From Neoechinorhynchus agilis (taxonomy: Eukaryota; Animalia; Acanthocephala): a stretch of 64,000 nt of DNA. Numbering within the stretch: position 1 is the stretch's first letter; the number at the start of each line of letters is the position of its first letter. The position numbers and the translations under genes were made by a program. A model generated the notes under the pieces. That model had not been told where the DNA came from. It was given only the letters and a program-made list of their open reading frames with translations, and made no database searches. Location of the stretch: positions 4,992,389-5,056,388 of the forward strand of contig CM121343.1 of assembly GCA_051530055.1 (NCBI GenBank), in the 5' to 3' direction. Below, piece by piece: positions 49,972 to 52,900 of this stretch.

Positions 49972-52900
49972 ATGGAGAGGAAAATTAGACACATCGTCAG
50001 TAGACAAAAGCGACGTTATACTCGAGGATCATTCGACCTCGACCTTACCTGTATCCTTTTCATCGTAAAACTGATTTTAACCGTAAATCTACTTTCTCCC
50101 GAAACTATGACGATCCCCGTGCCGTCATTGTTTCCCACAATCGACCATTTTCCACAATATTGTTGTTATTGCTTGTGGAAATATTTAGATTACATCGTTC
50201 CTATTTTCGCTCTTTTTTCCATTGAAATTACTGAGCTACAGTGCCGCCAAATCAGCCCCAAAATGTTTTTATATAATTGAACCAATTTTCAACCAAGTGG
50301 TAATTTAAAACTATTACACCGAATTTCCCTCTCTTTTTTCCATCACGCTCACGCGTCTCAATGAAATTGACGACTACCTAAACACTAACCGCATATCGAG
50401 TAGTCGACTTGTTTTTATGAAAACAACACCACTTCGCAAATATTTTGATCTGGGCCAATTTTGCCATAAAACTTTATCTTTTTATCAGTATTTTCTTGCA
50501 AATTGCAATATGAAAAAACGAAATTCATTCTCCTCCTAATAAACATTGAAGATTGAGTTCATGCCTTCTTTATGGCAAAAGGAATTTAGTAAGATATTTT
50601 TGATGAAGGCACACAAAATTGTACCTAATAAATTACTCCAATTTTCCATCATAGAAAAACATATTAAGCATCCCATTTAAAAGAATGATTTTTTTATAAT
50701 TTGTACCTTCGCTTTTTGACTTTTTTTCATCGAAATTATGAATGCCATGGATTTGAGATCGTCAAAAATTAATTGTGTACTGAAAACAGTAGGATGAAAT
50801 CAGCCTTCGGAAATTCCCTATTATCAAAAGTAGAGCGAAAATGTCACGATATTCGAGTTACAAATGCCGAATGATGCGACATTTAGTGGAACCCTTAGAA
50901 TAATCTTTAAAAGATCAAATTTAAGACATCAAAGAAACACGTTGTTGAGCATGAAGCTGGTCTAAAGTCCTTACATCCCGAATCGGCGTGAATTCAATTA
51001 CGTGCACTGTAACAATCTTATGGTCCCAGATCTCTCGAATCGGTCTCTAATTGATTGCCATTTTTTAGCTCATAATTTCCACCGGATCGTTTTCGGTTTG
51101 CAGCGTGTTTTATTTACTTCCATGCGAAATCGATATTGGCTAATATGGACGAAAGTCAGAAAAAAAGTATCCGAACGTTTGAGTCAGCTCACTACAACGT
51201 GCTAATGAAATTCTTTATAGACTCTTTATTCACTATTTTTATGTTCGAAATTGAACACTGGATTGAGATGCAAATTTTTTAATACAGAATCGAAATGATA
51301 ATTATTTTTAAGAATTTGTTGCTATGATTTTCAACGAATTGATTCTGCTCTTTTTCCGAAAGCTTCGATACATTTTGTTGACTGGGATGACCAATCAAAA
51401 TTTCTTAAAAATCTCACGCGAGGACCAACTTGTGATTGATGAAATCCATTCTCCTTAACTCGAACACATATATCCTTCCGAATCTTATTGCGATGGGTTT
51501 TCCAGCTCGGAATGTTCAAAAAGTATACCGTAATGATTTTGATGATTTTTTAAGGTATTTTAGGGAACTCCGTTGAAAGTGTTTAAAAAGAGATTTTTGT
51601 AGGTTTTTGAAGGAGGAAATCGAGCCAAAAGGCGATTTCCAAATATACAATCTGTAAGTGTTTCGCCAATTTTATTTGATTCCCTCATATTTATATGTCA
51701 AAGATGTCCTGAAAGTGAACGAGATATCTACGGTAATGCTGCGATCAGAGAAAAAGTTAATAATAATTTCACAACGGAGGATCACAATCCACCTAGATTT
51801 GTTGATATGATTGCCTTTTGTTCGTGTGCATCAGTCGAGCTTCACAAGGAGGATACAACATTGATTATTCATTGTAAAGCAGGCAAGGTTCGTAAGCTAA
51901 TTGGTTCTTCTTCTTTTTCGGACTATTTAGAATTTTTGTTTGAAACACCAGGGTCGAACGGGTGTCATGGTTTGCATTTTGCTATTGGACTGTGGGCGAT
52001 TTACATGCGCAAAAGATGCTCTTCTCTTCTATGCTGATTCCCGGACTTATGATGGAAAGGTTGCGAGTACTTAATTTGTGACAATGATGCTAATTTACGT
52101 TACATTTGTCAATATTGTTGCTGAGGTGATTCCTACTCTCCGGACAATAAAGTTATTTCGCTGGGCAAATCCAGCATTAATCCAAAAGTGCTTGAGCACA
52201 GCGAAATATCGCAATATCTTTATTGTCCGGAGAGTAGGAATCACCTCAGCAACACTATAATACCTCCGAGGAACCTTTTACATCAGATTTGTCAATAATC
52301 ATAATAGGGCGTCACTATTCCTAGCCAACGAAGATATGTTCATTATTATGAATTATATTTAAGAGGAAGACGGGTGTATGATGACAAGAGAATTTTACAT
52401 CTGAGAGGTCTTTTGATACGGATGAAGTTAAACGACGATCACCTTAAAAAAATTGATTTGGGCGATAAAAGAACAGGTTTGATTCGTCCATTACTTATAA
52501 TTCTAAAGTTCAAAAAGATCTAGGAGTTGTAATTCAAAAGAAAGTGAACAGTGAAACTCTAGCACATGGAAAGCTTCGTCTCATGAATGCTAATAAATCA
52601 GTCGATGAAATCGCACTTATCTACTTGTGTACTAAATGGTGGCCTTATTCGGCGTCATCAGACAAAGAACCCGATAAAATCAAAAATCATGTCGATCTCA
52701 TCAATGACAATGTATTTCTCATCAAAAAATCCTCGTTCAAAAATGAACCTTCATTTAAAACTCCGGTTACAAGCAAGGTGCGTACACATCATTTGTAAAA
52801 TATCATCTAATCGAGTAAATCAATCGTAGGAAAAAATATGCCAATTTTGGTTAAATACGTACTTTATATCACTAAGGAAAATCACCGATCCGGAAATATT

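Follow-up and report, generated by a model that had tools for sequence, protein, structure and literature searches.

A putative minor-spliceosome intron with GT-AT ends in the PTEN gene of the acanthocephalan Neoechinorhynchus agilis

Neoechinorhynchus agilis is an acanthocephalan that parasitizes fish, and the Acanthocephala are parasitic members of the rotifer clade. Its genome assembly (GCA_051530055.1) was built from a pool of worms using Oxford Nanopore (ONT) reads together with a little HiFi and Illumina data; it comprises 46.2 Mb with 13,655 genes annotated by BRAKER (PMC12690905), and an initial annotation of the locus described here was correct in calling the genome highly compacted. 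We analyzed a 64 kb stretch, referred to below as the window, of CM121343.1, a 7.8 Mb chromosome-scale record in this assembly. A PTEN gene of nine exons encoding a 392-residue product occupies positions 49972-53108 of its plus strand, and the first intron of this gene, which has GT-AT termini, probably belongs to the minor (U12-type) class.

Results

Identity of the gene

The assembled protein matched human PTEN crystal structures with an expectation value (E) of 4e-55. The alignment is free of gaps from residue 5 through the exon 1/2 junction and takes in KRRY...FDLDLTY, the catalytic P-loop and the C-terminal C2 strand. The P-loop (HCxxGxxR) is present as HCKAGKGRTG and is divided between the exon ending at 51887 and the exon starting at 51952, while a basic lipid-binding motif is found at the N-terminus. 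A PTEN_C2 profile match of 25.8 bits, slightly below the 27.1 cut-off, reaches residue 387 and thus covers the last exon. The structural match and the P-loop bear out the earlier assignment of the gene to PTEN. Exon 1 is the most relevant part for what follows. Human PTEN has the same residue at 15 of its 22 aligned positions (68% identity, versus about 36% over the whole protein), and constraint of this strength argues that the exon is included in the messenger RNA (mRNA) and joined to exon 2. The coordinates of the exons and splice signals are collected in Table 1.

Table 1. Exons, splice signals and related features of the PTEN gene, in window coordinates
Feature	Position	Strand	Remarks
PTEN exon 1, coding part	49972-50050	+	79 nucleotides (nt), ATG to first base of codon 27; 26 residues, conserved N-terminal basic motif
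PTEN intron 1, probably U12-type	50051-51469	+	1419 nt, phase 1, termini GT-AT
U12-type 5' splice site motif, GTATCCTTT	50051-50059	+	9/9 to consensus RTATCCTTT, counted from the exon boundary
ATG used as deposited start codon	51439-51441	+	Inside intron 1; codons run across branch motif into exon 2
U12-type branch-point motif, TCCTTAAC	51452-51459	+	8/8 to TCCTTRAY
Intron-terminal AT	51468-51469	+	First AT 3' of branch motif
PTEN exon 2	51470-51554	+	85 nt, begins ATATCCTT
PTEN exon 3	51603-51653	+	
PTEN exon 4	51704-51887	+	
PTEN exon 5	51952-52059	+	
PTEN exon 6	52308-52476	+	
PTEN exon 7	52518 (or 52509)-52777	+	
PTEN exon 8	52830-53024	+	
PTEN exon 9	53070-53108	+	Stop included; aligns with human C-terminal C2 strand

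The exon 1/2 junction and the AT end

Every in-frame pairing of a donor between 50020 and 50099 with an acceptor between 51400 and 51539 was enumerated. Only the junction 50050/51470 gave ungapped PTEN sequence (from FDLDLT onward), and not one of the in-frame pairs in these ranges was GT-AG or GC-AG. The closest upstream AG ends 47 nt before the junction, 5' of the branch motif, and the closest downstream AG ends 36 nt inside exon 2. The claim that there is a single in-frame junction, that it ends in AT and that no AG is available to it is thus borne out, and the intron can end only in AT. Pairs with AT-AC termini were rejected because the U12 donor motif ATATCC is absent and because they delete FDLDLT or insert residues; one such intron, ATCCTTTT...AC, lacks an ATATCC donor and would insert Cys-Thr. 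Shifting the junction by one base, for which a repeated T leaves room, produces TG...CA termini that correspond to no known intron type. Two AC dinucleotides precede the terminal AT, but their distances from the branch adenosine are only 7 and 9 nt, and G...C is a disfavoured combination (PMC3584512).

Donor and branch signals of intron 1

The initial annotation reported a perfect U12 donor and a perfect branch site 10 nt before the junction, and like its other statements about the sequence these were confirmed at their coordinates. The donor, GTATCCTTT, extends to GTATCCTTTT at 50051-60, and the branch motif is separated from the junction by the ten nucleotides TCGAACACAT. The presumed branch adenosine at 51458 (or 51457) is 11-12 nt from the intron's 3' end; the optimum for U12 introns is 11-13 nt (PMC3584512). 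Counted on both strands, the window has two occurrences of GTATCCTT and three of TCCTTAAC, which is the chance level for the window overall. Given the base composition of the intron, the joint probability of finding ATCCTTT after a GT and TCCTTAAC at any one of six suitable offsets is about 3e-8. The exonic base preceding the donor is T, and it is G at six of the seven other PTEN donors. These seven introns begin GTATTT, GTAAGT, GTTCGT, GTTGCG, GTTTGA, GTGCGT and GTTGGT and all end in AG; since they are GT-AG introns with unrelated donors, non-canonical splicing is not general in this gene. Pyrimidine content does not separate the two kinds of intron in this gene, as 13 of the last 20 bases of intron 1 are pyrimidines (mostly contributed by the branch motif) versus 9-13 of 20 in the U2-type introns, which likewise show no clear polypyrimidine tract. 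When all 27 RTATCC[TC] sites of the window were checked for a downstream branch motif, the PTEN site alone fitted and no second U12 intron was found; the sites at 9144 and 33127 were discarded because they are not located at coding-exon ends.

The first eight bases of exon 2, ATATCCTT, are those of an AT-AC-type U12 donor consensus. The mimicry that had been pointed out at this position is therefore real as a motif, but most of it is forced by Tyr-Ile codons. These supply ATATC in all species compared, and a Leu codon (CTT), where the others have Tyr or Arg, completes ATATCCTT. The match is most likely a coincidence. More speculatively, there is a small chance that it offers U11 a second place to bind and so helps to mark out the weak AT 3' end.

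The orthologous intron in other animals

The same codon is split in the same phase in the PTEN genes of Capitella, Saccoglossus, Tetraodon, Adineta and Rotaria (Table 2), and Capitella and Saccoglossus carry the U12 donor motif of N. agilis at the corresponding place. In human PTEN the first intron is the minor intron of the gene, and its splicing depends on U6atac (PMC3728624, PMC13141466). The orthologous introns and these reports agree with the proposal that the phase 1 position is that of the known U12 intron 1 of human PTEN. Since the annelid, hemichordate and teleost introns are all U12-type with GT-AG ends and the human one is a minor intron, the ancestral state was U12-type GT-AG. The AT end in N. 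agilis would be a derived, lineage-specific state, its orthologues in other phyla being GT-AG.

Table 2. Introns at the position of N. agilis PTEN intron 1 in other animals
Species	Donor	Branch motif	Distance to 3' end	3' end	Length
Capitella teleta (annelid)	GTATCCTTTC	TTCCTTGAC	12 nt	AG	302 nt
Saccoglossus kowalevskii (hemichordate)	GTATCCTTTT	TTCCTTAAT	12 nt	AG	12.1 kb
Tetraodon nigroviridis (teleost)	GTATCTTTT	CCTTAAC	9 nt	AG	605 nt
Adineta vaga (bdelloid)	GTAAGTAG	No functional motif		AG	57 nt
Rotaria sordida (bdelloid)	GTAAGTGT	None		AG	60 nt

With vertebrate PTEN intron 1 the N. agilis intron thus shares the gene, the codon (Thr26/Tyr27), phase 1, a GTATC-type donor and, in Tetraodon, CCTTAAC near the 3' end, and it differs in ending in AT rather than AG. 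Human exons 1 and 2 have coding parts of 79 and 85 nt, the lengths also found here. The intron measures 1.4 kb in N. agilis, where other introns are about 50 nt; the pufferfish intron is 0.6 kb and the human one tens of kb.

The two bdelloids, the closest sequenced relatives compared, have the intron at the same position and in the same phase. Judging from its GTAAGT donor, its 57-60 nt length and its retained AG end, the bdelloid intron has been transferred to the major spliceosome, whereas the acanthocephalan intron seems to have stayed minor-type. The A. vaga intron contains TTCTTTAAC (locus positions ~3135-3147), with one mismatch to the U12 branch consensus and 4 nt from the AG. This may be a relic of the ancestral minor branch site, although it is too near the AG to function as one, and the Rotaria intron has no such motif. 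Bdelloid rotifers retain a few minor introns elsewhere (PMC10639083). No sequence closer to N. agilis was obtained. Logan-derived matches to the PTEN model came from vertebrates, other invertebrates and one rotifer-like sequence, with no close relative among them; in an exhaustive search of 1.84 billion representatives, protist tandem-PTEN proteins alone outranked ordinary PTENs; and an Acipenser 'contaminant' entry, ranked second in the first search, proved to be simply a fish PTEN in tandem duplication. No locus was recorded for one coral protein. Searching with the C-terminal half, which is lineage-specific, gave zero matches, an outcome that is unreliable since even the deposited protein was missed.

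Length and content of intron 1

The other seven PTEN introns measure 48, 50, 64, 248, 32 or 41, 52 and 45 nt in gene order, so that the description of intron 1 as some 30 times the typical intron holds against six of the seven (32-64 nt). Long introns are not unique to this position, however, because a neighbouring gene requires one of about 492 nt with GT-AG ends. Intron 1 contains no open reading frame (ORF) over 67 codons and no transfer RNA gene. It matched nothing in Rfam at E<=1 and has no repeat in common with other parts of the window, and a nested gene, transposon or repeat was rejected as the cause of its length given the lack of such an ORF, of a transfer RNA and of similarity within the window. 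Species that have lost most of their minor introns typically keep minor introns of 200-1000 base pairs (bp) alongside major introns of less than 100 bp (PMC10639083). Diptera, bdelloids and Trichinella, which have undergone massive minor-intron loss, show this pattern. In Drosophila the U11 particle is reportedly divergent (Schneider et al. 2004, as cited in PMC3584512). Intron 1 is likewise far longer than the short major introns of N. agilis, and the persistence of a few conserved U12 introns in a reduced genome is a further likeness. Because it fits the known pattern of residual minor introns in short-intron genomes, the large size of intron 1 is not special evidence for its class. The unusual 248 nt of PTEN intron 5 are accounted for by a 49-nt inverted repeat (94% complementary, with a 49-nt loop) at 52112-52258.

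The deposited gene model

The public counterpart of this gene is a 362-residue 'hypothetical protein ACOME3_009677' at window positions 51439-54949, which is near-identical to the assembled PTEN. It lacks exon 1 and ends in ...DVKY by way of a far downstream last exon instead of 53070-53108. Between exons 6 and 7 it takes a 41-nt intron (52477-52517), and a 32-nt version (to 52508) is possible too. BRAKER-type gene finders generally model GT-AG (and GC-AG) introns only, and a start codon placed inside intron 1 is the output expected of a gene finder with this restriction. The deposited start at 51439 is an annotation artefact.

Other features of the window

Immediately upstream of PTEN, the minus strand carries two deposited genes at 47449-49851, one with an EST1 domain (308 residues) and the other with an EST1_DNA_bind domain (331 residues). 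They look like a single SMG5/6/7-like gene. Removal of a 492-nt GT-AG intron, with its donor at 48980 and the next exon starting at 48488, would connect the two in frame, with a GQPYN motif across the junction. The SMG5/6/7-like ATG (49851) is head to head with the PTEN ATG (49972), 120 nt apart. About 700 nt past the PTEN stop codon there is a 173-nt tandem repeat (53826-54531, 4.1 copies, 99% identical). At 36776-39114 an 18-nt unit, GATGACGGATCCGGTGTG, is repeated in approximately 129 copies with 87% matches and accounts for the high GC content and strong GC skew of the block at 36-40 kb; two open frames on its minus strand (804 and 782 residues) have no Pfam match. A 192-residue ORF on the minus strand at 22392-22970 contains a reverse-transcriptase domain (RVT_1, E 1e-13) and is probably a retroelement fragment. 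Three further, unrelated palindromic hairpins at 4045-4139, 16251-16420 and 32027-32184 gave only sub-threshold matches to Rfam microRNA families.

Discussion

The observed features of intron 1 are its motifs and how they are spaced, the single suitable junction, the absence of AG and the orthologous position. Taken together, they indicate that it is probably the ancestral metazoan minor intron of PTEN, kept as a U12-type intron with GT-AT ends in this acanthocephalan. The RNA is presumably spliced at 50050/51470, in which case the U11, U12, U4atac and U6atac small nuclear ribonucleoproteins would still be working in a 46 Mb genome. Eukaryotes that lack the U12 components also lack U12 introns (PMC2846911). 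Had the machinery been lost long ago, there would have been nothing to maintain the 17 consensus positions and their spacing or to keep exon 1 conserved, and without an AG the intron could not have been removed by the major spliceosome. For these reasons we prefer retention, and a minor spliceosome, perhaps reduced or divergent, quite probably persists in N. agilis; the interpretation put forward in the initial annotation is thus supported.

GT-AT termini fall within what the minor spliceosome is known to accept. Sheth et al. listed four human and three mouse U12 introns of this type, two of them conserved between the species, and cited experiments in which GT-AT supports U12-dependent splicing (PMC1557818). 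Larue and Roy counted 319 GT-AT introns among about 73,700 conserved animal minor introns (0.43%) and found most non-canonical ends to be one base away from a canonical pair (PMC10639083). The ends first noted as rare therefore constitute a documented and spliceable U12 subtype. The human-mouse conserved GT-AT introns of DEADC1 and SLC24A6 share with the N. agilis intron a G-starting U12 donor, a U12 branch motif and the terminal AT, but they belong to other genes and another lineage.

A plausible course of splicing can be outlined from these features. U11 would pair with GTATCCTTT at 50051 and U12 with TCCTTAAC at 51452, leaving adenosine 51458 bulged. Once the first catalytic step is complete, distance would set the 3' splice site, the first usable dinucleotide lying 11 nt downstream (CAT/AT), and joining of T (50050) to AT (51470) would restore Tyr27. 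The terminal AT may have arisen from an ancestral AG by a single G-to-T change that the minor spliceosome would tolerate and the major one would not.

Several observations weigh against this account. No minor small nuclear RNA gene was found in the 64 kb window with Rfam, either at gathering thresholds or at E<=1, a result that is uninformative for the whole genome. The terminal T is known from one assembly of pooled worms, and the protein collections contain neither a cluster at least 90% identical to this PTEN besides the deposited model nor a close Logan transcript-derived protein. A further objection comes from a BUSCO table covering 11 monogononts, 11 bdelloids, Seison, N. agilis and Pomphorhynchus (P. 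laevis). In it ZMAT5 (U11/U12-20K) is Missing in Seison, N. agilis and P. laevis and is scored as Complete or Duplicated in each of the 22 free-living rotifers; the same three species are also Missing for ZCRB1 (31K); and the small major-spliceosome proteins ZMAT2, TXNL4A, PRP31 and SLU7 are Complete in N. agilis (PMC12256650). We regard these losses as real but moderate counter-evidence, weaker than the signals in the intron. Their weight is limited because Acanthocephala have 428 cumulative losses among 954 metazoan BUSCOs (summary sheet of PMC12256650), because both proteins are short, and because ZCRB1 is also negative in monogononts. In the same table 10 of the 11 bdelloids have ZCRB1, and it is Missing in 11 of 11 monogononts, where ZMAT5 is kept (PMC12256650). 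Either the composition of the minor spliceosome may differ throughout the rotifer clade, or ZCRB1 may be a protein that BUSCO detects poorly. The supplements of the N. agilis papers make no mention of RNPC3, SNRNP25, SNRNP35, PDCD7, RBM48, ARMC7, SCNM1 or ZRSR2, and ZMAT5 and ZCRB1 are the only minor-spliceosome proteins in the BUSCO table. A literature search found no paper linking minor splicing and Acanthocephala.

Among the alternatives, the one that fares best accepts a U12-type intron but holds that it truly ends in AG, the T at 51469 being either a mistake in the consensus or a minor allele that entered the hybrid assembly from the worm pool. The orthologous introns of Capitella, Saccoglossus and Tetraodon all end in AG, the two states are one base apart, and the material sequenced was a pool of worms, by ONT, a little HiFi and Illumina (PMC12690905). 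Nevertheless, in a hybrid assembly supported by short reads, substitution errors occur far less often than GT-AT does naturally among minor introns (0.4%), and GT-AT introns elsewhere are spliceable and conserved, so we consider this explanation improbable. Less probable still is that exon 1 is unused, with transcription beginning within the 1419-nt stretch, translation beginning at ATG 51439 or at Met35, and the U12 motifs surviving as relics. The deposited BRAKER model was made with RNA-seq hints and does start at the in-frame ATG 51439, but a finder limited to GT-AG would be bound to miss exon 1. The ten residues from 51439 to the junction overlap the branch motif and have no PTEN similarity, while exon 1 has an ATG, a frame open exactly to the GT and its 68% human identity in the lipid-binding motif, none of which an unused exon would retain, and 17 of 17 consensus positions would not persist as neutral relics.

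It is equally hard to credit that the minor spliceosome was lost in Seison and acanthocephalans and that a modified major spliceosome now takes GTATCC...AT, in the manner of tunicates with their many non-canonical U2-type introns. This would account for the undetected ZMAT5 and ZCRB1 of Seison, N. agilis and P. laevis, it sits well with the degenerate U2-type donors of the gene (GTATTT, GTTCGT, GTTGCG, GTTTGA), and rare U2-type GT-AT introns are known in mammals (PMC1557818); but after an ancient loss nothing would preserve perfect U11 and U12 pairing motifs at optimal spacing, the T before the intron 1 donor is unlike the other donors, every other intron observed here ends in AG, and the bdelloid conversion to the major spliceosome came with a GTAAGT donor and a retained AG.

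Retention of the minor spliceosome could also take a more extreme form, in which Seison and acanthocephalans have a working machinery with strongly reduced or unrecognisably diverged U11/U12 proteins and no detectable 20K or 31K, serving a handful of introns that include PTEN intron 1. As a specific proposal this is rather unlikely.

PTEN intron 1 of N. agilis is probably a retained ancestral minor intron with its last base changed from G to T, and both the minor PTEN intron and the GT-AT subtype were already known. At the level of the gene, the analysis corrects the public PTEN model, from which the N-terminal membrane-binding motif and probably the genuine C-terminal exon are missing, and similar truncation is likely for other minor-intron genes in the N. 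agilis annotation. Within Spiralia, one ancestral intron now provides a three-state series, consisting of a GT-AG U12 intron in an annelid, a GT-AT U12 intron in an acanthocephalan and a U2 intron in bdelloids. Finally, the intron contradicts a simple reading of the published ZMAT5 and ZCRB1 BUSCO losses in these parasites and supplies sequence-level evidence that minor splicing survives in Acanthocephala, a group with one of the smallest genomes among animals and with a loss of nearly half of the conserved metazoan genes.

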